Below, piece by piece: positions 3,291 through 29,929 of a stretch of DNA of 64,000 nucleotides. A program made the translations under genes and the position numbers. Position 1 is the first letter of the stretch. Every line of letters starts with the position of its first letter. Source of the DNA: Takakia lepidozioides. Its lineage: Eukaryota > Plantae > Bryophyta. The stretch is from contig CM060734.1 in assembly GCA_030704615.1 (NCBI GenBank), positions 53,568,001-53,632,000 of the forward strand. The letters run 5' to 3'. The notes below the pieces were generated by a model that saw nothing but the letters and a program-made list of their open reading frames with translations, was not told where the DNA came from and ran no database searches.

Positions 3291-3433
3291 GTTTGCTCAC
3301 GTGAGTGGCATCACATAAGTGCATATCACAATACATTGTGTAGAGAAACCGAAGACTTACATTGCAAACATATGCTCCCAATTGGTAGTATCGGTATGTC
3401 CACCATAACAGCTAGCTTTCCAGCGCAGGAACA

Positions 3434-6560: not shown

Positions 6561-6788
6561 CTTCCGGAAGGCATTTGCCGGGCTGTGTGGTTGCCAATCG
6601 ATCATTCACTTCCAAAATACGCGCAATCTGACGCATATTTTCTGCTCCTCCTGAAACTTCCACGACCCTGCAAAGGACATTAAGAGTCACGGATATTGTG
6701 TTCGGATATTGTGGCCGGATATTCTAGTTTGCCCAATACGCCTTGCATATGGATGGATGCGGTCTCGAGGAGTTGATGAGGGGGGCTG

Positions 6789-6835
6789 CTATTTCATGAG
6801 CCATGAGCCATGAGCGGCATGAGCCATGAGCAGAG
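6789..6835 (+). repeat. Putative terminal inverted repeat of element 1 (CTATTTC followed by tandem CATGAGC)
   Basis: ctatttcatgagccatgagccatgagcggcatgagcc, compared with ctatttcatgagcagaaaccatgagccatgagccatgagccgcatgagcc at 50334. Confidence 0.7.
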
Positions 6836-7243
6836 TCGTAAGTGTCGAAAAAAACATGAGTAGGACTATTTTCCGGAAATGAGTGTCCGCGGGAATAGGG
6901 TTTAGGGTGTCACGGTCATAGGGGGAGAAGGACCTCCCGATGAAGGAGGTTCGGCAATGTTTTTTAGAATTACATATTGAAAGACAATGTTTCGCGAATG
7001 GTAGGGTGGTACTGCTCTGTACAATGGGGGCCCATTTCAGCCTACCAGCCACTTGCAAAATCCACCCACACTCCCAATCCCAAACGAAATGAGGAATGAT
7101 GCATTCTTGGAACGATGGATACAGAATAGAACAAAAAGAGGGCACAATGGGGTTTTTATTGATCCACATGAATTGCATTTGAAGCACGTCTACTGTGCTG
7201 ATTGTGCAAACAAATCTTTAGCCCTGTGCCTTCTGAATACAAG

Positions 7244-7807
7244 TCACGTTGTCAATGGGACTTCGACTGCTCTGAGAACTAGCTCATGAGTCATCGAGCT
7301 CCTCCAGGTAAACTGAATTGCAGCCGTTGTACCGCCCCTGTTGATGTTCACCACAATGTCGTGCCCTTCAATCATACCACCATCGAATATGGAAAGCTTC
7401 ACGTTTTCGTCGTCCACACCAATGCGAATGTCCCCATACAATGGAGAAGATGAGCGCACTCCTTCAGGAGTATAAGTCTCTCCAATGGAGTCCACCCACG
7501 TCCACTGGCAGCAGTTCCACCGCAACAGCATAGCAGTGCGCATTCTTCTGCATGGGTGCCCGTCGTAGCTGGGAAAATCAGAATCAAGGATGCGCAGGAG
7601 CCACGGACTCCTCAGACCAAGATCGTCACCCCGCTCGAAGGCGTACTGGCCTGGGATATACTCAAAAGCGGACAATGTTTCCACATTCGAACCAGTATCT
7701 TCTGTGTAATCTGTGTACCAGATAACGATGTCTCCCGATGTGGCCGAATACATTGCATAATCGAAGCCTCCATAAGGGCAGTCGTCCCGGTTCCGGAAGC
7801 ACGGCAT
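7244..7807 (-). CDS. Uncharacterised 187-aa protein (transposon cargo, paralog 1)
   Basis: Intact ATG-to-stop ORF that aligns end to end with 8364-8941(+) (CPY.G.DYAM, SGDI, RWNCCQWT, YGDIR, DGG.I.GHDIVV, ELVLRA.EVP). Conservation at the protein level shows it is coding. Confidence 0.75.
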   Translation of the reverse strand: MPCFRNRDDCPYGGFDYAMYSATSGDIVIWYTDYTEDTGSNVETLSAFEYIPGQYAFERGDDLGLRSPWLLRILDSDFPSYDGHPCRRMRTAMLLRWNCCQWTWVDSIGETYTPEGVRSSSPLYGDIRIGVDDENVKLSIFDGGMIEGHDIVVNINRGGTTAAIQFTWRSSMTHELVLRAVEVPLTT

Positions 7808-8363
7808 CCTTGCAAAGGAGGACCTGAGGACGTCTTTGATGCCGATGACAATGACCTTGCGAACAGCAACGAAGCCCTTAGATTTTCAAAATGATGAGAA
7901 GCGGAAGAGCAGTGCGGGCTCTAATAATGGAGCATCTGGGTCACACGTACCCACCAATCATCGTGTAACGTGTTCATCACGCCAGCGGTGGATGAACCGA
8001 TACCTCTTTCTCATCCACGGGGTATAGTTTGAAATCTGCCACCGAAGTCCATCCCCCGGATGGAAATTCGGCGCCGAATTTACATCGAAGGGGGGATGGA
8101 CTTCGTCGTCTCGAGTGGCTATAGGCCCACCTGGCACTTACTGCCCATAGTTTGCATGGCAGGGAAGGAAACTAAAACGGCTACATTCATGGAGCAGCCA
8201 ATCTTCATCCGTGCAGGTTCCTGTCGGGGGGAAATTTAAATGTGCCCTGGAGTGTTTGTGAGGAATTGCAGCGTTTGCTTGAATTTCTTCCAGCCACCGC
8301 GCTGCTGCCTCCTCCATCCGGGAGCTGCTGTCATTGAGCGTACTCCGCTACTCTTTTTCAAGG

Positions 8364-8941
8364 ATGTCGTGCCGCCGAAATCCTGCTGACTGCCCTTATC
8401 ATGGCCACGATTATGCTATGTTCAAACCAGAATCAGGAGACATCATTGTCTGGCTCTCTGTTTTCACAGACGCTTCTGGAATCAAGCGGGAGTCTTTGCG
8501 CGCAATGGAGTATCTGGAGGGCTATTACCGCTTTGAGCGAGGTGAGGGCGAGGGTCAATGCGGTCCGTGGGTCCTGAAAATTGTTGACCTCGATATACCA
8601 AGGTGGAATGGGATGCCGGACAGATCACGCACGGCCTCACTTTGGCGCTGGAACTGCTGCCAGTGGACCAGGGAGGACGGCACCGGGAAAACTATATTCG
8701 TGGAGTTCACTCCGCTTTTCCAGTGTATGGAGACATTCGGCTGAGTTGCGAAGACGAATCGCACGGGCACAGGAGGCCCACAGTGACCTTATCAATGTAT
8801 GATGGTGGTATAATTGATGGGCATGACATTGTCGTCAGCTCCACCAAGGGCACCAGATCGACCGCATTGCAGTTTACCTCGAGGTGCCGCATCAGTAATG
8901 AGCTTGTTTTGAGGGCTATCGAAGTTCCGTCGACTTGGTGA
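8364..8941 (+). pseudogene. Uncharacterised ~190-aa protein (cargo, paralog 2) with one frameshift near 8690
   Basis: ORF 8334-8744 matches the N-terminal half and ORF 8603-8941 the C-terminal half of the 7244-7807 protein. Confidence 0.72.
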
Positions 8942-9217
8942 CGCCCATGTAGAAGGAGGAAGGACTTAGATTTGTCTGGAGTTGCTAAATGTGATACGCC
9001 GTGTTCGATCAATAAAACAACCCATTGTACCTCACTACTCTGTGCTTGTGTTTCATCGTGTTCAAGAACTGCCGTAATTGGCCCACTGTTTACAATTTGA
9101 GGTCTCATTTCTACAATGTGTCTGTCCATATGAATATATCAGAGTCAACGATATCAGAGTCCTGAGGTGAAGAAAATCCATCTATGAGTAAAAGGAAACA
9201 TGTACACGCCGAAGCTC

Positions 9218-10265
9218 GGAAATTCGGCACCGCATTTCATTTTTCTCCATGCAGCGATTTCTGGCAGCTCCCTTTCCTCCGTTGTCGTCGTAACGGAAAT
9301 GTTGTACAACATTTCATTTCCTGACATGGCATTACCAAACTTCGAATTTGAAATGCGGCGCCGCATTTCCATATTGGACCTTGAATTGTCCGAGCATATC
9401 CAGTTGCTAATGCTTGTCCATGTCCATACTTGAAATGCGCCACCGCATTTCCATGTCCGTCATCGAAATTTCGTACCGGACAATGAACTGCGGCACAGCA
9501 TTTCCGGAGAGCACAATGGAATGCGGTGCCGCATTTCCGTCGAAGGGTCTGGAATTGGACAAACAACGATGTCCGTTCTGGAAATGCGGCACCGCATTTC
9601 CATGTTCGTCATCAAAATATCGTATTGGACAATGGAATGCGGTGCCGCATTTCCGTCCATCAAGACGGAATGCCCACACGGGTCTGGAATTGGACAAACA
9701 ACGATGTCTGTTTTGGAAATGCGGCGCCGCATTTTCATGTTGGGCAATCGAAAGTTTTTATAGGACAATGTAAGTTTTTATAGGACGATGGAATGCGGTG
9801 CCGCATTTCCGTCAAAGGGTCTGGAATTGGACAAACAACGATGTCCGTTTTGGAAATGCGGCGCCGCATTTCCATATACGTCATCGAAATTTCTTATTGG
9901 ACAATGGAATGCGGTGCCGCATTCCCGTCTAGCATCATGGAATGGGGAGCCGCATTTCCGTCGATGGGTCTGCAGTTGGAAAAATGTCCATCTCCAAAAG
10001 GTAAATGCGACACCGCATTTCCATGTTCGACCTCCGCATTTCCATTTACCTCCATGGAAAGAGCTGGCAATCGGCAAAACTGCCGTGTCGGAAACGGAAA
10101 TGCGGCACCGCATTTCCATTTGTCGGAACAGTTTCTGATGTCCAAACCATGAAACGGAAAATTGTTCTTGCCCCGGTTTTGGAAATGCGGTGCCGCATTT
10201 CCAAAGGAGGTTTTTGCAGTTGCCACATTTCTGTTCAGACATTGAAATGTGGTGCCGCATTTCAG
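9218..10265. repeat. Irregular array of ~17 palindromes GGAAATGCG-N4-CGCATTTCC
   Basis: Repeated ggaaatgcggcgccgcatttcc / ggaaatgcggtgccgcatttcc, plus a ~135-bp internal duplication (about 9510-9650 vs 9780-9920). Confidence 0.92.
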
Positions 10266-10400
10266 ATTTTGGGAGGGACCAGGTTTGGACGATGTTGTCG
10301 TTGAGAAGCAAATGGGAGAGGGGACATGAAGGACGGGGAGAATTTCCTTTATATACTTTGGAATAGAATTTAAATGTACAGAGAGTTCATTAAAATTCTA

Positions 10401-13400
10401 TTAATCTTGAAAATCATCACTATCGTCGTCCTGTCCTTGACTGTCCTGCTCCGCCTCCACCCCGTCATTGCCTTTCTCATCTCCAGCGGACTGCTCGTTG
10501 GCCAGGCTTTCGAAAATCCCATCTTCACCTTGCGGAACCGACCATCTCACCTCCATTGGCTCGTCGTCCTCCCTGTCTGCATCGCTCTCATCCGCTGAAT
10601 CACATATGAACTTTCGCATCCGTCTACCTGTCTCAGCTGTTGCCAACTCTTTCCTTATCTTTCTGTCCTCCCTAGCCATCTCCAAAATTTGCTCTACTTT
10701 ACTAGGATTCTCACATCGTCTAATCGCTGTATTTGCGAGTTTAGCTGCATAACTAGGAAGGGAGTAGTCCTTCACCGGGCTCGTCATGAAGTCGGCCCTC
10801 ACAAAGAACGGGACATTCTTCCTGGCAGGAAGTGTAGGCCCTACATGTTTCGACCCGGATCCTGGAATCCTGCACATAACAATCACCAACGAGACCAATG
10901 AGAACCACAGTCCGGAAATGCGTTTGACAAAAAATCACCCAGAAGGCTTTGCAAACTTACAATGTTTGCACTCACTCGTATTGCGGGTTCTCCTCGGCAT
11001 CAATGTCCACTGTCTCTTCCTCCGACTCCGACGAATCCGAGGAGTCCTTGGCTTCGATGGGAGCCTTCACATTCCGTTGCAGCCCTTCCAGATGGGATCC
11101 CCAGACGGATGTGTCCTCCTCGTAGGCAAAGAGGTGCCGGTCGGAAAACCGCCCAGCCCACATTGAGGCACCTGTTACAATGCCATCCACACATTATGAC
11201 ATGGCCCTTCACATGTTGCGAATGAAAGCATAACGAGAATTTGCAGAATAGCATACAACAAGATTCTGCATACATGTCCCACAGATGAGGTCGAGCACTG
11301 TGCCCTCCACGTCAGTGCATGTCTCCATAATTGTCTGAATGAAGGCAGGGCTTCGAGTCCGTGAATACCGCAGGGGTTCAGTTGAAGTGAGGCTATGAGG
11401 GAGAAGTTCCGTGGGAACGTTGTTGAACAGGACGTCGTAATCGATGGGGTCGCAGTTCGGGTCAACCAACAATCCCTCCTTCCGGAAAGCAAAGGTGGAG
11501 TTCTCCTTCACAAAGCAGTATGCATCGAACTGCTTCGTCTGCATACACAGTGGGGAACGATTAGAAATCGAATGCGGCACCGCATTTCAAACCCCCTAAG
11601 AAAATGAAAGGACGAGGGCCAATGTCGTAATTACCTTCTTCCCTTCCGACCGAAGGCCCAATGTGTTGATGCACGTCCACTTCTTCTTCAGAATTGGGAC
11701 GACGCTCTTGCGGGTCCACTTCGCAATTCATGTCTGCGTGTTTTTGCCTCTGCTCGCCAGGACAACCACACAGCCTCTGTCGTCCAACACCATGCAGGCG
11801 AGCCCGAATCCTTTCTTCCAAAAGTCCTCGGAGTACCTGTTCCAAGATGGCAAAGCTTGCAGTCCTTCCACAGGCTCTCCGTCCGGAATATCCAAGATGA
11901 TCATATCGCAAGACCACTCGGTGGCATTTCCGCCCCTCCTGCAATCCTTGTCTGCACACACCCTCTCAAAGAACGAGACCATCTTCAGAAACCCAGGGGT
12001 GTCGGAAGGCTCTTCGGCAGCCGCCTTCTTCAGTGCTCTGCCCTTCAGACCCTCCATGGTCTTCATGTATGCCAACTTGGCTGCCCGTCCATCCAAAGCC
12101 GCCAAGAAACTCTCATTCGCACACTGGACTACTGTATCGGGATCCACTTTCGGCCTTTCATTTCCACCGGCTCGAAAGGGTGCCCCCCCGGGGGGTTGAA
12201 GAGTGCCTTCTTTGCCGAGCCAGTTCTCGTCCCTCTCGTGACAACGGTGGGAACATGGGATTTCGGCTGCGTCTCGGGGGGTGGGCTGGTTGCAAAGTCT
12301 CCATCAGAGTCCTCTTCCTCACCCTCTACCTACACTATCTGTTTCTGCTTCTTTGTTTTCTTGGGTGTCACAACTGCTGCTCCTTGCTGGCGAGTCCGCT
12401 TCTTGGACCCCTTCTGTTGAGCCTGCACAGCTGCATCCGCCGTCTTCTGTCCCATCTCAGCTGCCTTTCTGGATTGTTCCAGAGCAGCAGCTTCCTTTGC
12501 CGACTCTGGCCGAGCAGGGACACGTCTTTCCTTTCTCTTCTCTTCTGCTTTCGCGTGCAGATCTTTCTCAGACTCGTCAACAATTCCGCCAGACATGTCC
12601 AAGTACCACGGGCATCCAACCAGATGCGCGGCATGCCATTGTTTCTGCATCTCGGGTGTGTAGACACAGCTTGGGTCCGCCACGGTCCAAGCCATGAAGA
12701 ATGGGGGCTCTTGAGCTAGGACCCCTGTCTGAAGAAGCACATATTTCATATACCTGCAGGGCAGTCAGCATGCGTGAGCAAATGTTGAGACCAACGTACC
12801 CGCAGAGTGCAACCGAAAACTTAAAATGCGAATGCGGTGCCGCATTTCCCAGAGAAACCTCATAACCAGGCTTTGCATACAAGGACAGCTGGGCTTCACT
12901 TGTAAACAATTCGCATTGCAGTTTTTCCCGCTCCCTGGCAAAAAGGTTGTCCTTGTACGCACATCTGAAATGTGTCACGTAGTCTTCCAATGTCTGTGTT
13001 CCATCCCATTTGACGTACAAGCCGAACGAATTTGTATGCATTACGACTTGCTCCTTCGCATTCGTCATTACCTGCGATTCCCACATGCATTGTCACGTAG
13101 CAGTTCAGGGAATTCATTTCAGAAAAGCAAATCTGGGGAAGTACCTTGAATTACCTGGAACCACCAAGTCATGCGGTTGAGCCACACATCCACTGCAGGG
13201 TCGGAAATTTCAAGAGGAAAAGACCACATTGTCCTTATACTCTCCGATGCATTCCAGATCGACAGCCACCGTGTCTGCCATTTCCGATCCAATGTGAGGA
13301 GCAGGAAGAAGAGTGGCTATTGCTAGGAAGGAACTTCAGTGCATTGAAACATCACCTTCTCTTTTGCTTCAACACATGTCGTTGAGAGGTGATGCAGTTT

Positions 13401-15305
13401 CTCCAGCTGCATGGTCGGCTGCATGGCCCGAGAATAGTGTTTTGCAATCTCGGGGATGAAGTCCTTTCCAAGTGTCGGATCTACAATGGCCACCAGCTTC
13501 ACAAGCTTTGACTTGTATTTCGTTTTGGACTTGACCCCGGCTTCCTTCAAGTGCTCAGTCAATGACTGCAACGTTTTGACCTGCCCCTCACTTTCCATGA
13601 AGAAGCGTTTGGCATGGGCCAAATCCAGCTTGATGTTTGACTGCCAACAAAAACATGCAGAAGCGTTACATTCGATTTAAGTGGAAAGATTACTGGAAAT
13701 TGGGGAAGGATGAGCAGAGGGAAATGGGAGGACGACTTACTTCGTATATAACCTCCACCATTCCATCCATAGTGAGACGATACCATGTCCGGTCAGTTTT
13801 TGCCACGGCTTTCTGAATGAGCTCGGGCTCCAGCATTTCCACAAACATGTGCGGATCAGTGAGACAGTTTTCCTCACCTTGTACAGCATATGTGCCATGT
13901 GGGTATGCACGTACGCATTTTCAGTGACCCTGCAAGGCACACTCTCCAGTTCAGTCCACGAAAGCACGGAAACAAAACATATTGGAAACCGAAATGCGGC
14001 ACCGCATTTCGAACGTGCTTGGGAGGGTATGAGTATCTTACGAGTTGAGGTCCGCCATGGCATTCTTGAGCAGGGAGGAGTCTGCCGCCTTCACCTTGAG
14101 GATGACACACTCCACCATGTAATGCCAGCCAATGTGCTTGGCATGATTCTGCTTGATGTACTCCCACCAGGCGAGAAGTCGGTGATTCCCGTCCCACACA
14201 AAGAACATTTTACCCGACATATGGCCGAAGTCTGGATCACCCTTCAGGGTTGCCTCGAATTCGTCGTTGCAAGTGTGTCAGTGGGTATCCCATGTTGACA
14301 ATTCATCCGCAGTGGGTCCACGAGATTCGCCGTCCTCATTCTCAAGGGAAACATAGAAGGCTGGCGAACCTAGACGGTACCCTTCTCGAAATGCGAACTT
14401 GAGCTTATCCACATCTCCCGAAAGTGCCTGCCTGACGATGGGAAGGGAGACCATGCGACAGAGTGGGATTCGAAGAGTCCGCTGGAATACCCTGCTGCCC
14501 AAAACTCTGCCAATGCTACTATGTGTCTCCTCCAACATTGTATCCGCTGCACTTTGGAATTCCTCCGGAGACATTTCTGCTGGTGGTGGTAGGGGCTGAG
14601 CAGCTGGAGCATCCCCAACTGGAGCTGCACTCTTGGGAATCTTGCGGGCAATTCTGCAATTGCAGAGGCCTCCTCCGGGCCTTCAGTATTATGAAGATCT
14701 TCCTCAACGGTGGTCAGGTCTTGCTACTCACGTTGAGAGGCAGCACCCACCTCCGGTACCACATCGACGATATCGGTCGATCCCATTGCCTTCGCTGCAG
14801 CAGAGACGCCCCCAACATCACCAAGCTGGAAATCAAGCAGGAACTGGGCTTCAGCTCGTGGAATCGGTTTTGCGGGAGACTACTCTGCCCTCCCCCTGAT
14901 TGCCTTGTGCTTCCTCATTCTTGCAGGTGAAGGTGTTTGCTGCAATTGAATCTGCTTCATTTGTCTGGGTGGGGGGGAAACGGCCTGGTCCGGTTCAGAA
15001 ACAAGTTGAAGGACGGGCTGCTTCTTCTTCGTCTTTGCTGGAGAAGGGCTAGACCCCTGCTGACGATTCTCCATGACCTTCGAAGGTGAGTCGCTCTCTG
15101 GGGCTTTGAACTGCAAAGACTTGCCCTTGGAAGCCGCGTCCTTGAAACGCACATGGCTAGGCCCGGCAGGAAGACCCGTGCTTGTGGATTGGCTGGGTGT
15201 GCGTGCTGCAGCTAGCTCCACGGACTCTACCTGCGGCTCTTCGGATTCCTGCAATCCCTCCAGCACGTCCACCTTTCCGGTTAGGCATGCAAACATCTTC
15301 TGCAT
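10401..15305 (-). pseudogene. Multi-exon ParB-like domain + N4C/N6A methyltransferase-like fusion gene (element 1 copy)
   Basis: RIPLCRM..R..D..KL..F..GY..G...FYVS and VWDGNHRLLAW (14038-14574); CDMIILDIPDG (~11900); RSPAFIQTIMETCTDVEGTVLDLICGT/GASMWAGRFSDRHLFAYEED (11100-11370). GT..AG introns and several stops or frameshifts. Confidence 0.82.
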
Positions 15306-15925
15306 TCAAGTCTCCTAACATACAGTCTAAGAATTGCAGAAGAAAAATGAGGCGGGTTTTGGTGCTCGATCAGCTGGCGAATCCCGATAGCACGGAGCTC
15401 TCATTGGTGGCTGGGTTGCCTGCATGGCCTGATGCTGCGAGATGGCAATCTCCTCCTGTAGTCACATCTGCTTCCTCCCCTTCGGCATTGGCCTACGTCC
15501 GAAGTACAATTTTTGGAGCTTACGACGATGTCTCTTCTCTGGTGCATGCACTCCCTCCCTCTCAGGTTCGAGCATAAGAAGAACAGAGACAGGGAAAAGG
15601 GGCGAAGAGTGCAGATAGAAAGGGCGCGAGAGGGGTGACTGAGGAGACACGACAAAAGAAGATGAAACGGCGGTGATGCACCACTTGGGTTCGAAAAGGG
15701 TTGGACGAAAGTGTCTCATCGTGGACTTTGCGTCATTACGAAATTCGAATCGTTCAGGGTACGCCTGCCGTCCGAAAAACAAACATCATTATCGAACGGT
15801 CCGGCCGCGCCGCCTCATGCCATTTCGGTCAGATAGAGTGCAGACATGTGCCGCAATTCCGTTGCTCCACGTGTTCACATTTCAAGGCATTTCCGTCCCA
15901 GCGTCTGATGACTTGGAGTGAAAAT

Positions 15926-17535
15926 GCAAATGCGGCGCCGCATTTCCTTTAAGTACCATCACGAAGCTACACATCCGTACTTGTTGGAAGAAAATGTGGC
16001 ACCGCATTTCCGTTCCACCTTCACATACCTTAGTTGTTGAACGGAAATACGGTGCCGCATTTCCGTCCCACAACTCCATGCCTGAGATACAAAAGGGAAA
16101 TGCGGCGCCGCATTTCCGTTCTAGAATGTCAAAAGGTGCGAGTGGGATGGAAATGCGGCACAACATTTCAGTTCCCGTGGTTCATGATTTTCAATCTGAA
16201 CGGAAATGCGGTACCGCATTTCCGTTCCACCTTCACATACCTTAGTTGATGAACGGAAATGTCGTGCCACATTTCCGTTCGGGAAAGTATAAAGGTCTCA
16301 CCTGAACGGAAATGCGGTGCCGCATTTCCGGTTTGGAAAGTTTGAAGGTCTCACATGGATGGAAATGCGGCACCGCATTTCCGTCCCACAGCTCCAGGCC
16401 TCATATACAAAACGAAAATGCGGCGCCGCATTTCCGTTCTGGAATGTCGAAAGGTGCGACTCGGACGGAAATGCGGTGCCGCATTTCACGATTTTCAGTC
16501 AGAACGGAAATGCGGTACCGCATTTCCGTTCTGGAGAGTATGAAGGTCTCAAACAGACGGAAATGCGGTGCAAAATTTTCGTCCCTCCGCTCCATGCCTG
16601 AGATAGAAAACGGAAATGCGGCGCCGCATTTCCGATCTGGTATGTCGGAAGGTGCGACTCGGACGGAAATGCGGTGCCGCATTTCAGTTCCCGTTGTTCA
16701 TAATTCTCAATCAAAATGGAAATGCGATACCGCATTTCCGTTCTGGAGAGTATGAAGGTCTTAACCAGTCGGAAATGCGCTGCAGCATTTTCGTCACTCG
16801 GCTCCATGCCTCAGATACAAAACGGAAATGCGGCGCCGCATTTCCGTTTTGGAATGTCGGAAGGTGCGACTCGGACGGAAATGCGGTGCCGCATTTGAGT
16901 TACCGTTGTTCATAATTCTCAATCAGAACAGAAATGCAGTACCCCATTTCCGTTCTGGAGAGTATGAAGGTCTTAACCGGTCGGAAATGCGCTGCAGCAT
17001 TTCCGTCACTCGGCTCCATGCCTCAGATACAAAACGGAAATGCGGCGCCGCATTTCCGTTCCGGAATGTCGGAAGGTGTGACTCGGACGGAAATGCGGTG
17101 CCGCATTTCAGTTCTGATGGTTCACGATTTTCAGTCAGAACGGAAATGTTGTACCGCATTTCCGTTCTGGAGAGTATGAAGGTCTCAAACGGACGGAAAT
17201 GCGGCGCCGCATTTCCGTTCTGGTATGTCGGAAGGTGCGACTCGGATGGAAATGCGGTGCCGCATTTCAGTTCCCGTGGTTCATGATTCTCAATCAGAAC
17301 GGAAATGCGGTACCGCATTTCCGTTCAACCTTCACATACCGTGCTTGTTGGATGGAAATGCGTTACCGCATTTCCGTTCTGGAGAGTATAAAGGTTTCCC
17401 CCGGACGGAAACTCAATGCCGGTTTTCCGTCGCACTGGTGCATGACTAAGATGCAAAACGGAAATGCGGCGCCGTATTTCCGTCCAACAGCAATCGAAAG
17501 TATCAGTCCGGACGGAAATGCGGAACCTCATTTCC
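15926..17535. repeat. Phased array of ~30 palindromes GGAAATGCG-N4-CGCATTTCC with 53-bp period and 212-bp higher-order repeat
   Basis: Units start at 16043, 16096, 16149...16467 and 16506, 16559, 16612...17460, in steps of 53 bp with one 39-bp deleted unit. Spacer types recur. Confidence 0.95.
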
Positions 17536-17929
17536 ACATGCGGATCCTGAATGGGTTGCATTGTTCCGAAACAACACAATTGCGGCCTGTCTTGATGAGC
17601 ACAACCTGGTTGTCTGACAGTTTTAACTAACAATCCTGGCACTTGTTAGTGCGAACGTTCATGTCTGCACCGAGAATACTGCTGGATCCACCCTCAGGAG
17701 AAACTGTCAGGAGATGTTATTTCATCGCCGTATCGGCCATCATTGTCATACTTACTGGCTATGGAATCACACCTCCCACCTTCATGCATGTAGCTTGAAA
17801 CAATACTTTCCACTTCTATGTGTGACTTCCAATCGTCGATGGACTCCGCAGATCCACTTACATGGTGCCTGTGAGCCTTGGTCTGTCGCTATACTGAACC
17901 TCGTACTTGCCAACTTCGTGCGGTCTTCG

Positions 17930-20900
17930 ATGGCTCTGAATTCCTACGCTATAGTTTGTTGTCCTCCGGAACTTGGGAGAGCTTGGATCCCAAACGAGGG
18001 AGGACTTTGCAGAGTGACTGAAACTTACCTTTGTTCCAAATTCAAGCTCAAATCAGGCACAGTTTATTTGCAAGAAGAAATGAAGGATGTTCCTGGACAG
18101 GTTGACGAGACCATTGTCGTGCTAGGTAACGACGGAGGTTGCGGAATCGAATGGCACGTACCCCCATCAGATCTTGTACCGAGCTGTGGGAATGCCCATT
18201 CCCTTTCCAAATCAGTCGCTGCCCACACCATCCACAAATGAGTCCGGAAACCGACAGGCGGCCACTGCCAACAGAGTGGTATGCAACGATAATCATTCCC
18301 GACCTGGACCGTCAAGACCCTCCATAGCTTCTCGTGTGGACGTATTCGACATTTCCGACGAGGAAGATGAGTGCATTGAGGTCCCCATGTCCTCCACACG
18401 GTATTTCAAATCCGACATGGACGTCTCTGCAGGTGCTACGCATGTACCCTCGAGCATAACTCCAACCCGGTCCATTGTGCAGCTCCTATGGCAACATCAC
18501 CTCGATGGTTCTTGCTCCGAGCTGGCTGCTCTCGACTATGCCAAATTTCCAGTTAGGAAGGTAACGTATCTGCCTCCCAAAGTCGATGGCAATGTCATCT
18601 TCAAGTTTCCACCTGTTACTTCATCAAACAAAGCCTCAGGGATGTTAACAGACATGGATCGAAAGCATGACGGACACCCCTGGTGTGTGACGAAGACTAG
18701 TAGCACAAAAATTGCTGATGGTATTCGTGTACGATACGTCCTCTGTGCGGGGAAGCTGAGGTGCCTCAATCCCACCTGCTTCCACTTTCTCTCCAAAGGA
18801 GGGCGGAGAAACGAGACGGATTGGACTGGCACAACGCATCATCCATTCATTGTCTCCAGCCAAGCTCCTGCGGGTACTTTCAAGTGCGCACATTGCAAAG
18901 AACCACCGACGTGCATGTCCATGTGCAGAGCCAAACAATATTACGTTATCCATTTACTCCCGGACTTGACTAGAGCTTGCATACACGTTGGGGTCCACTG
19001 CCACCCCTTGGCGAGAGGCAACATGCGTGAGACTGTGCAGGAAGCACACGACATCATAAAAGAGGAGGTGAAATTGAGCCCCAGAGCCAGACCAAAGCAG
19101 ATTCAGCTGAAGGCAGCCCACAAGATTGCTCTTGGCAAAATCATGTCTGAAGATGGTTCAGACCGGGTGCCCTTGAACAAAGAGGAGATGCTTGACCTGT
19201 TGGAGTCCGTCTCGCACATTTGTAGTCCGAATGTGCGGAATCACATCGTATCTTGCAAGCAGGAGTTCGGCCGGGGGTTGGACATGCACTCAATCCTGGA
19301 GGTGAAACGAATGACTGGATATGACTACATCCAAGGTAGCAGGTTTCTAGGGCAAGGCAGCGAATCCGATCGTTGTTACATTTTTAAAATGTCAACGTGT
19401 GGGCCTGGGAGTGGAGTCGACTTGGTCACTCGCATGACAACTGGAAACTTGTCGAATGCTTGGGTGATGTTTGATCACATCAAGCGAATTACAAACCATC
19501 AGTGGGTGACTATGGGTGCGCATGTTTATGACTATCACTCCAAGAGGCTCATGACGATTGCAATCTGCGAGATGAAAGGGGAGGACACACAGTCGGAGAT
19601 GCATCTGTGGGAGGGCATAAACGAGCAGATGGCAAGGGCGGGATTGCCAGAGCCCAATTTCAGGGGATTCATGGCAGACAACGCTCAGGCCAACTGGGCA
19701 GCGGTGCGGCGTGTGTACGGTGAGGACCCCAATGTTCCAATGGAGGGGAAAGAGAGATCCTGTGGATTCCATTGGATGCAGAGTCTATCTCACTACACTA
19801 CCAAATTTGTTGCTAGCTCATTCCAGGCTGAACACCGTGTCCTTTGTACGGCGTGGAAGGATGCACCCACATTTGATGACGCGGAGGTTAAGTTTGCTAT
19901 CATCGAGGCTTGGTGGAACACGTCAGGTGCAGTGGAGACAACCAATCTAGGAGCCTTGCACATCTGGTTGGGGTGGTGGCATTTCCGGTATCGAGAGTTC
20001 GGATAGTACATGCGGGAGGTATGATGCTGTCATTTTCGTGCAATTGTTTTTCTATTACGGACCTTTCCATTGGTTCCTCACCATTGTTTGTGTCCTTGTA
20101 GGAGCGGTGCTTGGATTCCGACACGGACATGCCGAACACGAATATGGCAGAATCAGTGCACTCCTCCTGGCGAGCGTCTTTTGCCGCACATCTGGTGGAC
20201 GTAGTGACGGCCACAACGGAGGACATCGACAGAGCAATCATGCAGCAAGCCACGTACTACAAGTTCCTGAGCGGGAAACAATGGGGCTTTGGGCCGGACA
20301 GGGTGGAATTGTTGGTACGAACAGCTTCGAGGTCGAAGAATCCACTGAAATGGGCGACAACATTGCGAGAGAAGATCAAAGGGACGCCTCTACACCGCAG
20401 AGGTGAGCACCTAGAGGGGGACGTCTGTACTTGCCCTGTGAGGCGGAGGATTGAAGAGGAACCCGGGTGCGAAGAGGATTCCTGGAGATCCGACAGGAAA
20501 ATTCGGACAGCACCTCGAGGGCCCGTCATGTTGCCACACAATGTGTCTTCCAGCAGTGGAAGCCCAACAAATTCCAGATCGCCATCGCCTTCAAGCGGGG
20601 ATTCCGTGCAAGAAATTCTCACCGCTCGCTTGCCCCAGATTCCGCCCGCTGTTATGTAGTATGGCCAAGCCATTGTGGAGACGACTGTGTCTACGTCACA
20701 GTGGAGAATTGCTTGCACAAAGCCGTCCTTTCGAGGCAGGTGTTCCGCAATTCGAGTGGATACATGGCAACGTTGTTTAGAGATGATAAGGAGGAATCCA
20801 GATGGTGCTGTCCCTGCTCCTACTTTTACAGGAAGATTTGTCCATGCAAAGTTTGCGGAGGCGACAACCACCCAGTTCTGGTTCTGCAGGCACGACATTA

Positions 20901-20963
20901 TGACTTGCGTGTATGGAAAGCCCAAGTACAGCATACAAACAATGCCAGAGGCTCCCCCGGTGT
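17930..20963 (+). pseudogene. GCM-like/MULE DDE transposase of element 1 (5' part; continues at 51729-51156)
   Basis: 610-aa ORF with DGHPW..CAGKLRC..C..CAHC..C..HVGVHCHP, WVMFDHIKR (D1), FMADNA (D2) and ERSCGFHW (CxxH). Intron 20019-20101, then NMAESVH (E). In-frame TAG stops at 20004 and 20657 and a frameshift near 18170. Confidence 0.9.
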
Positions 20964-21546
20964 AGCCCAACGACGCAATGGCGTGAGCATGCGAGCGTAC
21001 GCTCACGCAGGAGTGACGTGGTGTGAGCGTCATGTCAACATGCTGATGTGGTGGTAAATGATGATGTGGCACTGTCCGTCATCTGCCACGTCAGCATTAA
21101 CATGCGCCGCCTATAACCGTGGATGGTCCTATGACCGTGGAATTAATGCAGGGAATCTTGCCTAAATAGAATCAAGACGAGCGTTGAGGCCTACAATTGC
21201 AGCATCCAACATTGTGCAATTACAAATGCTTGTTTCACTTTTACAATTACGAGGACGAAAAAATATCCTCACAAAGTGTGCGCCATAAAGGCTGCCACGG
21301 GAAGACCTCCTCCCTCCTCAAATAACAATGAGAGTTAGGATCATCTTCAAAAGATGATTGTAGTGCATAGCGACAGCAAGACATGTAGACTTCGAACGGT
21401 GCAATGACAAATGTGCACTACCTGAAAGTTGTCACTCAGAGCTCACTCCGTATAGTTGGAGGCCATATCATTGCACCGCCGACGAATTGATGTGAATTAC
21501 ACATTTCAAATCATGGTCGTCCACATACCACATTGCATAGTTGACG

Positions 21547-24500
21547 CTACCCATGTGTTGTTTCCTGCTGCAAAAGAGTATCGACCTCGTTGAAACTCAT
21601 AGTGGCCTGGTGAATGAAGTTGTCACGTTTGGGATCGCAAACCATCCTCTTCAAAAATATGAAATACAAATGTTTGCAGGGTATGAATTTACCTCTCTTG
21701 CCCAAACTGGTTGATAGCACATTCACAAAATCAGGACATGTGCAATTGGGGAAATTGGAAACCGTGATGTCGTAGGTCCTGTCATGAACAACAGATGTGG
21801 AAGTGATGATTGTGAATACCCGACCATATCCTGGATCGGGTACTTCCGTGGTGCTTCCAACACGAGCTTGGAGCATTCTTGCGGACTCCACTTTGCCAAA
21901 GTGTTCAGCGGTTGAAACGCCGAACGAGCTTTCCATCTCGTTTGGTTGGCCACAAGTCAGGATTTGCCGGGGGGACCCGGGAGGACGCATAAGTAGTAGC
22001 ACATGCATGGAGTTGGGGTTGTCTCGCAAGGGAAAAACCTGCCTCCTCCAGCATTTCAATCTCCTGAAAGCTGAGATGTGTTCCCACCTTCACGGGCCAA
22101 ACGCTTGGAGGAGATGGCTTCATCACTACGGAAGGACGCATAGTTCCATGCACACATCTGGCACAATCATATGCGCAGAACCAGAACTTGTGGTTCTTGG
22201 CTTCTGGTTGACCATATGGACGCATCAAGCCCGTGAAAGTCGGAGCAGGAGTTCGGGCACCACCTCTGGATATAGATGAAGTGCACTTCTCAAAATTAGT
22301 TGCCCTGATCGCTGTACATTTCACACGAGAGCCTACACTTGTGCGTTCTATGTACCAAACGTGGTCGGGGCATGCGAACTCAAGCACATCAAGGGGGTTG
22401 TTTCTCTCCTGCACCATTTCAGTGGCACTGTTTGATGCTGGAGCTTGCCGTCGTGTTGGAGGTTCCTCCACAATGGAGGTTCCGGACATGGAGCTGTCAT
22501 GCAGGGGAACACGAGGCTTCGAGAAGTTATCACGGTCTGCCCTGTGGGAATCTAAATCCAAACCAGGTGGAGTGTTCAATTTCCTCTTACAGGAGCCGAA
22601 TCTCTCCTCCCCTTCAAGATGTGGAACTCTAGAAACAAGTGGCGTTCCCTGGGCATACATGCTCACCGCCTGTGCTATCTTGATTGGATCCCCAGATCTG
22701 TTTGCAGCAACATCAACTCCCATTTGTCCGGACCCTTGCCACCAACCCCACCTCGTAAGAAATCACGGTATCGGGTTTGTTGTCGCAAGGCACGTATCAA
22801 ATCATCTGTTGTTGCCACATACAAATCCCGACCTCGTTTCCCAGACTGCTGCAACCATGCGTTGTGCACAGTTTCTGCCAAATTGCAAGATGGCATGTCC
22901 GCCATTTCCTCAATGGACATGTTCTGCAAAGTGCAGAACCACACTTCAAAACAGTGAACAGAAAACAACATAAAGAAAGCGAGGACACAATAAAATGGAA
23001 AGCAAATGTATGGAAAAGCAATAAATATAAGCCTCGTACCAATGGCATGGCTGCTCCCCACTGTCTATACCGGAAGTGCCAAAACGCCAGCCAATCTTCC
23101 AATGCTCTCATACTCTCAAGTGATGCAGCTCCAGAAGAGAACCACCAGGCACGAATTGTCTGGAACAAAGTGTCCGCCTCCTTCATTGTTCTAGCATCTT
23201 TGTACTCTTTGCACAATTTACGGTGCTGAGTCTGCATCTCTGGTTTGATGTCCGACTTTGTATGTTTTTCCAGAGATTGTGTCCAATGGAATAGACATGT
23301 ACGCTCTCTTCCTCGCATTGGCACTTTTGGGTCGCCCGATCCGAAGAGAATACGAACAGCATTGAAATTTGCTTGAGCACTATCCGCCATGAAACCTGCG
23401 AAATTTGGAGATGGCAGCCCATGACAGCCCATGACACGTATCAGGGAATTCCACATGAGCTTCTGGGATTCCGTATCCTCGGATTGCATGTCACAAACTG
23501 CAATTGTCATAACTCGTTGGTACACTGGATCGTAGACATGACAAGCCATTGTTGTCCAATCCTTCACTCGTTTCACATTATCAAACATAAGAAAACAGTT
23601 CTGCAAGTCCCCAGTCTTCTGCATCCGCTTCACGAGGCTAACCCCACTGCCCTCCCCAACAGTCGACATTTTGAAAAGAAAAACTTTGATGGCACCTTGA
23701 CCTGGGAATACATTGTATGTAATCGCACTTGCTCACTCGTTTCAATTCCAAAATATTGTCTATGTAGCCTCTGATCCTAGAGCCCATTCTCAATGCATTG
23801 ATCTGATGCCGAATGTTCGGTGAACTTAAAGTGGAGAAATGATCCATGACCAGGTCCAATGCTGCACCGTCAAGTTTAGTCCCCACAGAATCCCCTTCAC
23901 TCAAAATATGGCTTTCCAAGAAGGACTTGCTTGCGCCAAGAGCAATTGCAGATGTTGTTGCGGATGGGTTTCTCTCGAACTCCTGTTTAATCAACCTCGA
24001 TACTGTCTCAACACTCTCCTTGTAATCCCCCTTCGAGACAAGATGGTTATGGAATCCAAAATGCACACAAGCTCTTGTCATTGTTTTCAAACGGTGGACA
24101 ACATAGTACATTCTTGCTCCGCAGAGCGCCAAGCAGGATGGCACAAGTTTGCAGAATTTGCAGACGAAAGTGTTTGCCGATGGAGGGGCAGTCCCAGGCT
24201 GAAATGGATTTTCCGCCAAACCCTCCCATTCGCTTTGATTATGAACCCCAGACTGAAGAAAGTGTCTGCAATTCAAATTATCACACCTAAGGTGTCCATT
24301 GCAAACTGTCCTCCTGAAAACAAGCTTGTCATCATTCTGAATATTGGATGTTTTTGTTCTGCACCACGGGTGCCCGTCGTGTTTCTTGTCCATTCCATGC
24401 ATCACGATTGTTACACCTCCAACTCGTGGAGGAGGAGGCAGCTCGAATAGGATATCGCCATCAAAAGTCTCCGGCAAGCACTTCACAGGCACCTGCTTCA

Positions 24501-25167
24501 AAGATTCCCAATCAATTCCCCGCAACTCACTTTTGAATCCAGCCATTCCTCCCATCGCCCGCAATTTTGGAATGACACTACAAATCTCTTCTTCATCAGC
24601 TTCTCCAACCACAGTAGGAAGGACTAGATTTGGAATTTCACTTATGTCATCATCGGAAGAATCCGAAAGCTCAACGATTGGAGTGGAGGACGTCTGTTCT
24701 TTTTTCACCACCACCTCCCTCTTGTCTTCAATGACCGAAGCAGCAATCCCGGGCGTCACATATGACCCAAGGGACTTTCGCCGAGGCTCTCCAAGTACTC
24801 TGTATCGACCAGGACGCACTCTCCACTGGCTGATATGAGCTGTCTCATCACGGTTTTGGAAAGAGTATTTCAACAACTTCCCTTTAAGATCGTACACCTC
24901 TTTCTCCAAAAAGATGGAGCCATTCTGCAGCTGAAAACGGGTAGCCAAGACATGTTCCAGAACAATTGCAAATCCATTGTCAAGGACTTCCTGGGAGAAC
25001 GGCACTGGTTTGTCGTCAGAGAAGAACTCCGCTTCAGAGGAAGCCATCTTCTTTCCTCGCGTACGTTTGTACCTTGCTATCGCAGATCTAGTGTAAATCG
25101 GTTTACTGATGTCTCCAGAACACAGTTGAAGAATGAGCAGAGAATATGGCGGAGGAAGCTCAGACAA
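21547..25167 (-). pseudogene. Full-length GCM-like/MULE DDE/SWIM transposase of element X (few frameshifts)
   Basis: DKKHDGHPWC..CNGHLRC..CKFC..HFGFHNH; FLMFDNVKR; FMADSA; ERTCLFHW; intron 22924-23039; NLAETVH; SWIM PNCTCPDF..PCKH. Frameshifts near 23710, 22705 and 21905. Confidence 0.92.
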
Positions 25168-25903
25168 TGACTATGCATATTATGTTATTCTTTCCAGATA
25201 TGCAGCCGTCCATTTTAATTACTTTTCTTGTGGGCCCAGTGGTCAGAGTATCCCTAGGAGCAGTGTCGGCAGCTGTTAAACCGTTAACCAGAACCTCATC
25301 AATAAACCCAATAACAAAGCCGACTTCCTGGAAGCATGCCACAGGATCTGAGGATGGGATTGCAGATTAAGTAAATGTATCTTTATACTACTACCAATGA
25401 TCATGCGCACCTGGAAAGTTCCAAATGTGAAACGAATGTGGGGTTTGGCTAACAATGATGACCGTGTATGATATTCCAAGATTTGTCATCAAACTCTCGT
25501 TCATTTACATTTATTTGTGTAAGACTGTGCGCCAAGATTTTTGGGATTCGATGTTATTTTTAAATATTGAAACCGTTCTAATAAAGAACACGCCGTTTAT
25601 TTTGGGCGACACACGTCAGACATCCATAACTGAATACGAACTGCTGTATACCAATTGCTGGCATGTGCACTAATAAGGGAACGACTATGTGTAACGGTCA
25701 CGCGAGAGGGAATCCGATGCTTCTAGAGACACGCAAGAACGCAGGCAATCCCGCAAGAAATCAGGAGTCACTGCGTTTTTCTACTTTTCGCGCTTAGAGA
25801 GAGAGTGGTAGTCAAGCTGGAGAGGGTTCCTTCTACAATACGAAAGAGAAGAAAGTCTCTTTATTTTACTTCCCTTAGAGAGAGACGCAGAGCAAGAGAG
25901 CAA

Positions 25904-27720
25904 ATGACGAGGCATCGTTTGTTGGAGAACACAGGGCCAAGGCAACAGGTGAACGCGGAGACTGATTCAGAAGAGCAGACGGAGACTGAGGCAGCGGCTG
26001 TGACACAGTCGGCGATAAGAGTGCACCAGCCTGTGGAGGCAGAGATGATTCGCAGGGACACTGAAGGAGGTGGAAGCACGCGGAACGCCGAACCGGGAGA
26101 AGGTCCAGAAACCCTAGAGCAGACAGAAATTCCAGCAGATGTGAGAGGGAAGAGGAAAGCTGCAGAAGGGGATCCAATTTCAAAACCTAAGAAGGCGCCA
26201 GTAAGTTTTATCTAACTTACATTTCATTGTTGAAGATATGCGTAGAGATTGAGTGGAATGTCCCAGACAGGGATTGTCGCTACCGACCATCACAAAGGTG
26301 ATTTGCTTTCTACTCCTCTGCTAAGGGTTTACCGCACAATGAGTGGGTGACTATCGGTACAGTCATTCACTATTGTTCAGATCATACAGTCTGTCTGATT
26401 GCCTTTCAAGGAGTCCTTCCTCTTCCCTTCTTTAGCAGGAACTACTGAATTGCGAGCGTCGTTAACGCCATTCGATTCTCCTCATGAGATTTATGTACCT
26501 ATGTGTTTGAAGAGAGAGTGAGGGTCGGCATACCGTCAATCATCATTGTTCAGACCATACAGTCTGTCTGATTGCCTTTCAAGCAGTCCTTCCTCTTCCC
26601 ATGCTGGCGACGGTAATCACAGTGGAGTCAATCTGAATAATCTGCACTTACTGTCCGCCCTAAACTATACTGAATGTCGTTGCCGCCAATCACTTGCACA
26701 TAGATGTCATTACACAACACCAATCCGGCAGGTCGTTATCTTTTGTGATTGTCGTTAACACCGTTCGCTATCGCTCTCGCCTTTGTTTTGAATACGGCAG
26801 TATCAGCTTTGCTTGTGTAGATTGTGCTAAATTGTTTCACACCATTCATAGTGAGTTTCTTTGAGACAGAGTGATGGTCGTTACCGCCATTCACTATTTG
26901 CAAACTACTCAGTCACAACTGAATGGCATCGTGCAAAAAACTGTGAGGTCGAAGCCTACAGGATCAGAGGGGAAAGGATCTGGAGATGGGGACGAGTCCG
27001 CAAAAAGCTCAGAGAATACAGATGAAGCAGATGAATCTGAAGTGCACTACCTTGACAAGGTGAAAGAACTCATGTCATTCCAGAAGGTAAACTCTCAGGA
27101 GGTTATACGAGACATGCTCGTATCTGGAGGGCGTCTGGACATCCCTCTGTGTCGGATGATATCAATGCCTGTTGTGCGTCCACCTCTTTCCCATGACATA
27201 ACAAAATTGGAGAGTGATTTTGTGCATGGATATAGACTTGGTGCACAAGTTTTTTATGTGTCACTAACGGATATAAATGGGAAAAGCACATTAGTGTCTC
27301 CAGAGATCAGTGATAACTGGGATGAGTGATGGAAAGATGCCAATGAGGAGTTCGAGCTGGGCCTCATGATGGGAAAGAACACCCAGCAATTCTGCAACCA
27401 CATGTTCTACGTCTGGGACGGCAACCACCGATTGCTGGCATGGATGGGATACATTCAGAAACACCATGCGAAAGACAAAGACAAGCATGTTGTTGTGGAG
27501 GCAATGGTTTTGGATCCCGGAAACGACATCGCTAGGCTTCTTACAGCTATGCACGACGTGAACAAGTAAGTCATCCAGGAGATTTCATTCCCTCTGTAGT
27601 GTCTTATTAATCCTCAAAAAACAGTGTTAAGGAATGCAATGTTTCCAATGTTTTTGCAGATCGACAGAGAAATCGCATGTGACAACAAGTTTGGTTCACA
27701 CACTATTCCGAATTCAGAGG
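25904..27720 (+). pseudogene. ParB-MTase fusion gene of element X, 5' half (ParB-like domain)
   Basis: LDIPLCRMISMPVVR..KLESDFVHGYRLGAQVFYVS and FYVWDGNHRLLAW. Introns from 26201 and at 27566-27659. Cut after ..TLFRIQR at 27720. Confidence 0.85.
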
Positions 27721-27860
27721 ATAACCATAGGAGTGCTTGCGGTGGATGCAGGTGCAGGTGTAGGCTATGTTAGGAACTTAGTATTCCAAACCATAAGCCG
27801 CAACAGGTTCTCTACCCGGTTACCTTGTGGAGAGGGGGTTAGGGACATGTTCATGACTGG

Positions 27861-29130
27861 TTGAGTGTCAACACGGAGGTGCCACTAGTTGCTGGGGACA
27901 GTGCCGGTTCGAGCACTAGCGATACTAGTGGGTACACGAGACGAGGTGTGCGGTTTAGGCCACCTTCACCTCCTGTGTCTTCTACGGAAGGTTCTGATTC
28001 GGATTGTGAATCAGGGGGACTCATACCGGCGGTGCAAGTTGTTTCATTGCCATTGTTGTGGGACACAATGGAGGAGATGTATGGAGCTACCAAGGGGCCA
28101 CGAAGGTACTCTGGGGCGGTGGGCACCATCGAGTTGGATGATTTTATCCAAGAGTTTGATAGTTGGTGTGATTTGCAGCAAATGCGCAATCCACAACTAT
28201 TTACGCCTTTCATGGCATGGAAGGGGCTGTTTCAGCACCTGGAGGGACTGCCTATGGATGATTACCATGAGTTCAGGTGAGGGCATGAGGTTGAGATCGA
28301 GGAGTGGAGGATGTACTGGTCACCCGACTATGTCTCCATCACTAGGGGCACTAGAGCCACGAGGGCAGTGGCTACACCTGCCGCTGCACCGGCATCTTCA
28401 GCAAGCAGCAGTGGGACTGTCCACCCAAGCCACTACCGCACCAGCACCAGTACCCATGCCTGCCTTCAACCCTGTTGTGGAGTTCTTCGAAGAGTTGAGA
28501 GGGAACTACCAAGGGGTGAGGACAGAGAACTTGCGGAGCTTGCAAGAGTTCCAACGGAAGCCGACTGAGAGCTTGAGGGAGGCTTTCACTCGCATGAGGT
28601 GCTTGATAAATGTAACCCAAGGGGTTACGGAAGCTCATGCAGTCCAATTCTGGTATGGGATATTGGACAAGGAGCTGAGGAGAAGGGTGCGGGATGCAAC
28701 TCTCCTACAAACGGCCCAACCCACCTTAGCAAATGTGTTTTTGCTGGCAGAGCGGATAGAGCTCAACATGGTGGAGGAATGAATGGTCATGGTGGGATTT
28801 GCTAAGGAGACACCACGGGGTAGTGGTGCTCCTAGCCAACCACTACCTCAATGTGCTCAAGGCAACAAGGGGGCTCAGGTGAAGCTCAGGGAAGGACAGA
28901 GAGGACCTCAGATGCAGGGGTCTCTTCCTTCATTTGCAGGCCAACAACGGGTTGAGGTGGTGTGCTGAACATGTGGAGGACCCCATGTCAAGAAAGATTG
29001 CCCAGAGGGAGGCAAAGGGCCGGCACATGCACAGCCTGCACAGTTGCAGTGTGGGCATTGTGGCAAACACGGGCATGGAGAGGCCCAGTGTTATGGTTTG
29101 CATCCCGAGTTGCGCCCAAGCCAGTTCCAA
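27861..29130 (+). pseudogene. Retrotransposon Gag with CCHC zinc knuckles
   Basis: PRRYSG..LDDFIQEF; FQRKPTESLREAF..F..IL..LRRRV..TLANV..AERIE; CGHCGKHGHGEAQC at ~29047-29090. Confidence 0.8.
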
Positions 29131-29929
29131 GGGAACAATGGTGGCCGGGGGGCGAGGTGGAGCAGCCCAGAGAGGACAAGGTGGCCAGGCATGAGGTGCA
29201 GGCCAAGGGCAAGCTCAACATGGCCAAGGACGCGGAGGTCAGGGTGTTGACCAAGGCATGGTCAACCGGCTTCAGCAGCTAGAGCAGAGGCTCGCTGCCA
29301 TGGCTACAGCTCAGGTGGTACCGGCTCCAAGGCCGGATGGTCCACCTCCTGCTCCTGAGGGAGGAGATATGGGAGGCATGGGATTCATGTGCGGAGCAGC
29401 ACTACCACTAGTGCGGGTGGAGTCTGCTGCAGCCGTGACTCGAGGAGCAGCACGAGTTCCTGAGCCACGAGGTGCAGAGGTGGAGTTGGATTCACAGCGT
29501 GGGGAGGCAAGCCGTCAGGCTAGGCTTCCTCAGTCATTCACATTGGCGGAGACAGTGTCGACGCCATCCATGGCACCTAGTTCTCGCCCGACTGTTACCG
29601 ACGTGGAGGTTACTATGCCATTAGGGAGAGCTACACGGGTAGCACCACTACCTAGTATTGCCAAGGCTACGGCAGCTAGTGTGCTGCTAGGAGCGGCCAC
29701 ATCTGTGTGCCAGGCTCCATTGTTCTCGGCTACCATAATTGCGACGCCGGGGGTAAGACCAGCTGAGGTGTTCAGGCTCGCAGCTACACTCCGTGAGATA
29801 GTGGGAGGTGTAGTGCCGGAGGGATCCTCGGATTTGAGGGTCAAGACTGCCACGGCGGTGCCATGGCAAGTTGCAGCTGCCATGTCGATGGAGCTGCCAG
29901 CTAGGCCAGCCATTGAGCGCGCCATGGTT

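Follow-up and report, generated by a model that had tools for sequence, protein, structure and literature searches.

A two-gene Mutator-like transposon lineage of bryophytes with a co-diverging accessory gene for predicted ParB-like and methyltransferase-like domains

Does a transposase gene that stands head to head with a spliced gene for a ParB-like and amino-methyltransferase-like protein form one transposon with it, and what might the second protein do there? This question is raised by a 64,000-nt stretch of Takakia lepidozioides DNA (GCA_030704615.1, CM060734.1, forward strand, 53,568,001-53,632,000; this whole stretch is the window, and positions are counted from its first nucleotide). 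The window consists of plant DNA rich in transposons, with broken insertions nested in one another, and translated self-comparison and profile scans identify in it five copies of the second, or partner, gene (M1-M5) and six transposase pieces (T0-T5). These copies very probably belong to a bryophyte lineage of large (≈10-15 kb) Mutator-like DNA transposons whose accessory gene has long been inherited together with the transposase, and the copy termed element 1 is a damaged representative of a cut-and-paste transposon that is abundant in liverworts and mosses. An earlier note on this DNA had proposed an old, diversified Mutator-type group with a spliced second gene, a proposal that fold, head-to-head linkage and co-divergence support; judged from sequence, the two-gene lineage is real and old, with a putative function that is predicted only.

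The divergent layout reported earlier for element 1 is confirmed, with the start codons of M1 and T1 at 15305 (minus strand) and 17930 (plus strand), as is the same layout in a second copy, element X, where T2 faces M2. The genes of the two pairs are as follows.

10401-15305, minus strand: M1, spliced gene for a ParB-like plus amino-methyltransferase-like protein, damaged; ParB-like exon with a DGNHR motif at 14026-14574.
17930-20980, plus strand: T1, transposase with GCM and Mutator DDE domains; D at 19473, D at 19677, CxxH at 19761 and E at 20150; frameshift at ≈18180 and stop at 20004.
21550-25170, minus strand: T2, the transposase of element X, with GCM, MULE and SWIM and 41% identity to T1.
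25904-27720, plus strand: M2, partner gene of element X with its ATG at 25904; ParB-like half at 27009-27578; another type of palindrome in its introns; cut by a retroelement.

Two details of the earlier description need correction. The GCM-MULE-SWIM architecture holds for T2 in that it has SWIM, whereas T1 retains GCM and MULE only, being cut at ≈20980 ahead of SWIM. Likewise, the partner gene of element X retains its ParB-like half, and its methyltransferase half is gone, cut at ≈27800 by a Ty3/gypsy-like element.

Homologues of the transposase are found in the liverworts Riccia sorocarpa and Calypogeia fissa and in metagenome contigs; the JGI (Joint Genome Institute) contig sets are presumably peat-moss samples. 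When 15 independent loci with at least 6 kb of upstream sequence were picked by the transposase alone, seven (L005, L016, L029, L030, L031, L032 and L041) were found to carry the partner upstream on the opposite strand, comprising four of five loci in liverwort assemblies, the single long European Nucleotide Archive (ENA) contig and two of nine strongly CpG-decayed moss-type contigs. Loci picked by the partner have a head-to-head transposase in three of five cases (L033, L037 and L039) and long terminal repeat (LTR) retroelement sequence directly upstream in the other two. No layout besides head-to-head was seen in these loci, and the pair recurs in Riccia, Calypogeia and moss-derived contigs. 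Across nine pairs, the identities of the transposase and of the ParB-like domain are correlated (Spearman 0.865, Mantel p 5e-5; examples are 78/78, 67/70 and 60/52%), a statistic drawn from few pairs and non-independent kin. The earlier note had regarded a partner usually unlinked to this transposase, or incongruent gene trees, as contrary to its proposal; the linkage counts refute neither part of that proposal, nor do the trees, which are without supported conflict. Host phylogeny alone is insufficient to explain the co-divergence, because several lineages share one genome and element X is nearer to a moss-type copy than to element 1. Between two Riccia families the ratio of nonsynonymous to synonymous substitution rates (dN/dS) is 0.05 for the ParB-like domain, 0.11 for the middle region and 0.12-0.13 for the methyltransferase domain, with dS near saturation. 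The accessory gene is linked to the transposase, co-diverges with it and is under purifying selection. Passively captured cargo, or a chance neighbor in a transposon-rich region, would suit a nest of broken insertions in which three partner copies have no facing transposase; this explanation is nonetheless largely refuted by a layout fixed in ten outside loci, co-divergence, dN/dS near 0.1 and uniform high copy depth over the block described below, and we consider it nearly excluded.

Is the transposase that of a Mutator element? A phmmer search returned 1009 relatives, and Pfam MULE and GCM match neither any window copy nor any of these. A structural model of one relative (pLDDT 79) finds ISCth4 (E 1.6e-3) and the GCM domain 1odh (E 3.6e-3, probability 1.0) as best Foldseek matches; both E-values are modest, and both folds are those predicted beforehand. 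ISCth4 is an IS256-family transposase, related to Mutator. A wide structural search returned generic helical bundles only. T1 retains D, D, CxxH and E at the Mutator positions. SWIM is found only in T2 and in the tails at 40.2 and 51.2 kb (PF04434 E ≈0.002 for two; the matches in T2 and T3 narrowly miss the Pfam cut-off), and T1 is without it because T1 is cut. Fold, motifs and profiles thus identify a predicted IS256/Mutator-type fold with a GCM domain, and WRKY-GCM1 plus DDE plus SWIM is a known architecture of Mutator-like elements (MULEs) (PMC1702500). A well-folded, β-rich N-terminal domain precedes the GCM domain in the transposase (P0151:1-90) and is shared by T1 and T2.

The partner gene is harder to classify. 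In M1, all seven introns checked have GT..AG ends, and the methyltransferase domain is encoded in pieces at 11659-11937 (motif IV DIPDG) and 11251-11496 (motif I VLDLICGT). Homologue searches were made exon by exon, so that full-length homologues in other plant groups may be missed. At the N terminus, DGNHR is near-invariant in 53 homologues and a Box II GxxR follows a hydrophobic strand; this domain family numbers at least 654 database proteins. Embedding look-alikes in the Atlas are DUF3723 (0.96) and ParB_N (0.92), with recognition below the safe level of the tool, and the recurring sub-threshold matches are phrog_1033, ParB-like (E 0.08), and DUF1015 (E 0.06). Motif, sub-threshold matches and look-alikes weakly suggest a ParB-like domain. 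No relatives were found in viral contigs or plasmids, and for the ParB-like part none were found in phages. The only match in prokaryotic genomes is an apparently intact, plant-type ParB-methyltransferase gene in a cyanobacterial bin (L040, CADCWO010000058.1). We read it as probable bryophyte contamination and not as a prokaryotic donor, because it has plant-type intron-like breaks and CG-N4-CG palindromes.

The C-terminal domain is more tractable. PF01555 matches the Riccia protein P0163 (E 2e-7), the nearest sequence matches are phage DNA methylases, and profile alignment (HHalign) reaches 91-94% to two of these, spanning motif IV to motif I. The order motif IV, target recognition domain (TRD), motif I is present, as is the S-adenosylmethionine (SAM)-binding motif I, and the window copies match the shared profile; the domain is, on these sequence features, a predicted β-class amino-methyltransferase fold. 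An AlphaFold model of it from seven sequences has a pLDDT of 32. Motif IV reads DIPD, DLPD, DCPT, DLPS, DLPT, DVPE, DHPH, DQPH, NQPS or CLPN, where the phage counterpart has DLPY; most retain Asp and Pro, S, T, D, E, N or H stands in place of the aromatic residue, and several lineages have an eroded glycine-rich loop. Because the catalytic DPPY reads D-x-P-[S/T/D/E/H], DNA methylation is doubtful. Of the ParB plus N4/N6-methyltransferase identity assigned earlier, the amino-methyltransferase-like domain stands, the catalytic aromatic residue is gone and the ParB call has weak evidence behind it. The description of Marchantia DN4MT1, which gives TSPPY and mentions no ParB domain, does not support identity with that protein.

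These motifs bear on the idea that the accessory protein actively writes N4-methylcytosine (4mC) or N6-methyladenine (6mA) at or around palindromes with a CG dyad, marking its own element and blocking host 5-methylcytosine (5mC). We regard this as unlikely. All copies in the window and in Riccia, as well as L040, lack the aromatic residue, the Asp is missing from one Calypogeia copy, the glycine-rich loop is eroded as noted and the proven 4mC enzymes have SPPY. The idea nonetheless draws on the retained β-class motif order and SAM-binding motif I, the purifying selection on the methyltransferase exons, the alignment of DLPxG with phage DLPYG and the outer CGs that resist decay (see below). One lineage (L037 and L038) has D-x-P-H, in which His could stack like Tyr, and eukaryotic 4mC writers exist, namely Marchantia DN4MT1 and rotifer N4CMT (10.1101/2021.02.12.428880; PMC8885841).

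What the protein might recognize is suggested by palindromes. The 20-bp family-A palindrome is present in ≈50 copies in element 1 (49 matches in the window versus 0.05 expected), mainly in two places.

9219-10263, no strand: family-A cluster downstream of M1, 16 palindromes.
15927-17534, no strand: family-A array (GAAATGCG-N4-CGCATTTC), ≈29 copies in strict 53-bp phase, between the gene starts.

Three M1 introns each hold one more (11569, 12829 and 13991), two lie near the sister end at 50326 and none was found in element X. Palindromes of their own, lineage-specific and all built on CG-N4/5-CG, occur in the same places in other copies and in the loci from Riccia, Calypogeia and the ENA. Most paired loci carry them between the genes and in partner introns, and palindromes also lie behind the genes. 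The family-A sites are mainly internal, at least 1.3 kb from the left end, which bears its own CATGAGC repeats. Of their two outer CGs, one is intact in 45/53 copies and the other in 43/53, whereas the central CG reads TG, CA or TA in 38/53, a pattern that fits selection on, or protection of, a putatively bound CG dyad in methylated DNA; array homogenization could contribute. We considered whether the 53-bp array might be a CRISPR or an RNA; Rfam gave no match, and we read it as a tandem array because its spacers recur with 106/212-bp periods. In one CpG-decayed moss-type copy, TTCCAA-N4-TTGGAA palindromes lie between both genes (L016:2766-3443), as expected if CG-dyad palindromes decayed after element death.

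To one mechanism we give about an even chance: the accessory protein may bind the palindromes of its own family and keep the divergent promoter open against silencing, with methyltransferase activity altered or nil. It would recognize CG-dyad palindromes of its own family and load or oligomerize there through the predicted nucleotide-binding ParB-like domain, so that the shared divergent promoter would stay open against host 5mC silencing, as with VANC in VANDAL elements or VirB in Shigella. The methyltransferase domain would more likely bind or shield its target base, or work with altered efficiency, than act as a canonical DPPY enzyme. This idea matches the proposal made for algal elements.

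Several observations weigh against this mechanism. No significant ParB match is returned by Pfam, PDB or HHalign, and the ≈500-residue stretch between the two domains matches no family and no helix-turn-helix (HTH) family; a canonical ParB clamp combines an HTH with a dimerization domain and loads at parS under CTP control. A canonical (D/N/S)PP(Y/F/W) motif IV occurs in no lineage read, eight of the 15 transposase-picked loci have no partner, the paired loci L037 and L039 have weak or no arrays and RNA contigs barely overlap the region. The element genes are CpG-depleted (observed/expected 0.64-0.74), and protection is therefore at best partial or transient. Finally, the family-A half site ATGCGG matches six of eight bases of the GCM binding consensus ATGCGGGT, which is an animal one (PMC2172107), and the transposase could therefore be the binder.

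If it were, the palindromes would be sites for the transposase GCM domain, serving autoregulation or transpososome assembly, and the accessory protein would be a transposition cofactor like maize MURB, with no anti-silencing role. Beyond the resemblance of the half site, self-regulation of expression through binding of internal sites has been proposed for WRKY-GCM1 domains of MULEs (PMC1702500), and a Calypogeia locus in which no partner was detected (L028) still has palindromes. Palindromes of other lineages, however, mismatch the GCM consensus, sites are located within partner introns and at a distance from the left end, and Plavaka elements, whose transposase is unrelated, also have paired palindromic sites next to their ParB cargo (10.1101/2025.02.11.637652); we think this explanation improbable, to the same degree as active writing. 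Binding and shielding by the accessory protein itself could also be imagined as a ParB-parS-like system in the plant nucleus, in which a nucleotide-gated clamp would load at CG-dyad palindromes of its family, spread along the element, write 4mC or 6mA with a non-canonical active site and shield the family from 5mC while protein and palindrome co-evolve; we hold this to be decidedly unlikely.

How complete and how active is element 1? Its left end, a related end elsewhere in the window and two small genes are placed as follows.

6781-6831, plus strand: left end of element 1, a G-rich terminus followed by CATGAGC repeats; ≈500-fold depth jump; contigs of other copies start at 6781; sister end at 50326.
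7244-7807, minus strand: small cargo gene s1, encoding 187 aa and lying within the high-copy unit; an inverted paralogue of s2 with 65% identity; dN/dS ≈0.47 versus s2.
8334-8941, plus strand: small cargo gene s2, paralogue of s1; frameshift near 8684 in this copy.
50326-51760, minus strand: transposase-side end of a family-A element, with the T4 SWIM tail (51171-51491), two family-A palindromes and a terminus like that at 6781.

Contig depth rises ≈500-fold at 6781 and stays high across both small genes, the palindrome cluster and the M1 3′ end, and most contigs covering this block are at least 95% alike; because of the sustained depth and this similarity, we read the block as one abundant, partly recent repeat unit. 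The copy itself is dead, with stops and frameshifts in both M1 and T1 and T1 cut at ≈20980. Neither a right end matching element 1 nor a target-site duplication (TSD) was found within the window, which also holds no complete element with paired ends and a TSD. A terminal inverted repeat (TIR) plus TSD pair (TSDs of 8-11 bp are a Mutator feature) was found neither in the window nor in the outside loci, and the G-rich ends at 6781 and 50326 are alike with differing flanks. The piece at 50326-51760 is possibly the inverted right end of element 1 itself; its flanks give no TSD. The ends at 20980 and 51742 both start GGCGTGAGC, each cutting a transposase gene near the same protein position (VWP motif), and may reflect a shared insertion hotspot or an inversion. 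The proteins of s1 and s2 (≈190 aa each) match no family in Pfam-type libraries or the Atlas, and a 63-bp hairpin (8043-8105) lies between these divergent genes; the pair was not seen in the outside loci.

The remaining copies in the window extend the earlier inventory. Its two further ParB-methyltransferase genes, M3 and M4, are confirmed, and a fifth, M5, had been overlooked; its three further transposase pieces are present, and the count is four (3417-5037, 40248-40781, 51171-51491 and 59783-60008).

3417-5037, minus strand: T0, older transposase copy, with element 1 lying in its upstream region.
34149-38724, minus strand: M3, partner gene, 5′ end cut at the element end at 38738; motif IV DLPDG; intron palindromes AGTCG-N4-CGACT.
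40248-40781, minus strand: T3, transposase tail with SWIM; palindrome array after it at 39403-40100.
46506-50326, minus strand: M4, partner gene, 5′ end cut by the family-A element end; motif IV DCPTG.
52850-56870 (start and end approximate), minus strand: M5, partner gene, ParB exon lost; motif IV DIPDG; intron palindromes GAATGTCG-N4-CGACATTC.
59783-60008, minus strand: T5, transposase tail fragment, DNA 71-78% identical to the 3′ part of T1.

A C5 DNA methyltransferase domain (PF00145, E 1e-11) is encoded at 30752-31834 in the Ty3/gypsy-like retroelement that cuts M2 (27850-33400, plus strand). An hAT element (40950-45290) has ends that hold a TGCGACCACC-armed palindrome at 51-bp phase, which resembles the 53-bp array and accompanies an unrelated transposase, and a degenerate 10-bp satellite with unit CACAGCCCGT occupies 57068-57773. 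Outside the window, Riccia sorocarpa has a methyltransferase-only copy between two host genes (L034:10001-11195), without transposase or palindromes and with retroelement-like sequence just upstream, which is possibly a truncated copy or a domestication.

How does this element compare with known systems? With VANDAL elements it shares a Mutator element, an accessory protein and family-specific internal motifs, and VANC binds such internal motifs. VANC has an unrelated sequence and a proven function, whereas the bryophyte function is predicted and the motifs are palindromic. The anti-silencing role of VANC was established in Arabidopsis VANDAL (PMC6446971), which has been named as the sole transposon known both to bind its own sequence and to modify it (10.1101/2025.02.11.637652). 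The earlier note did not recognize the element as a described family; its cargo type was already published for Ectocarpus Sola1-1_Ec32, where a 1104-aa ParB-like plus N4/N6-methyltransferase gene lies opposite the transposase and self-binding and self-modification were proposed (PMC12477816). Sola1-1 and the bryophyte element each have this single gene on the strand opposite to the transposase in a giant DNA transposon; the former belongs to the Sola superfamily in a brown alga, whereas the latter has a GCM-MULE-SWIM transposase, and the accessory proteins are likened by description. Related cargo is found in red algae, where a Bostrychia preprint describes the Plavaka-associated genes PAG2 and PAG3, which bring PF01555 methylase and ParB domains to Plavaka and Chondrus Mutator elements, with tandem inverted-repeat arrays beside the ParB gene as in the bryophytes (10.1101/2025.02.11.637652). 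There, however, the domains are in separate genes, fused to SET and 2-oxoglutarate (2OG)-oxygenase domains, and the genes hop between families, whereas the bryophyte ParB-like and methyltransferase-like domains are fused and co-diverge with one transposase lineage.

ParB-N6_N4 methyltransferase fusions are common in phages (PMC12704722), and one phage match, VPHD93_0127 of Vibrio phage D93, is itself a ParB_N plus N6_N4_Mtase fusion. The domain order is the same and phages supply the nearest methyltransferase-domain matches, but the phage proteins are ≈400 aa, intronless and canonical in motif IV, whereas the plant protein has a long middle region without a family and a ParB-like domain too diverged for significant alignment. 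Marchantia DN4MT1 and rotifer N4CMT likewise represent a prokaryote-derived β-class amino-methyltransferase fold in a eukaryote; they differ as host genes with SPPY and proven 4mC activity, with no ParB domain reported, and are not transposon cargo (10.1101/2021.02.12.428880; PMC8885841). A literature search, with Repbase and Dfam outside its reach, found no paper on Mutator elements of bryophytes or other land plants with a ParB-methyltransferase gene. The land-plant version is an addition to a recently proposed class of transposon accessory proteins, the cargo type itself being already described; added here to the algal proposals are co-divergence, family-specific palindromes and a non-canonical active site.

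Algal ParB/methyltransferase cargo, reported in 2025, has so far been a proposal only, and the bryophyte elements make that proposal testable, with many near-identical copies in the Takakia genome, several matched protein-palindrome pairs for swaps and transformable liverworts. Should 4mC or 6mA be what the protein writes, land plants would have a transposon-encoded epigenetic writer, and with it possibly a programmable DNA-marking module; should the protein be a pseudo-enzyme, selection would have maintained a methyltransferase fold for shielding or reading.

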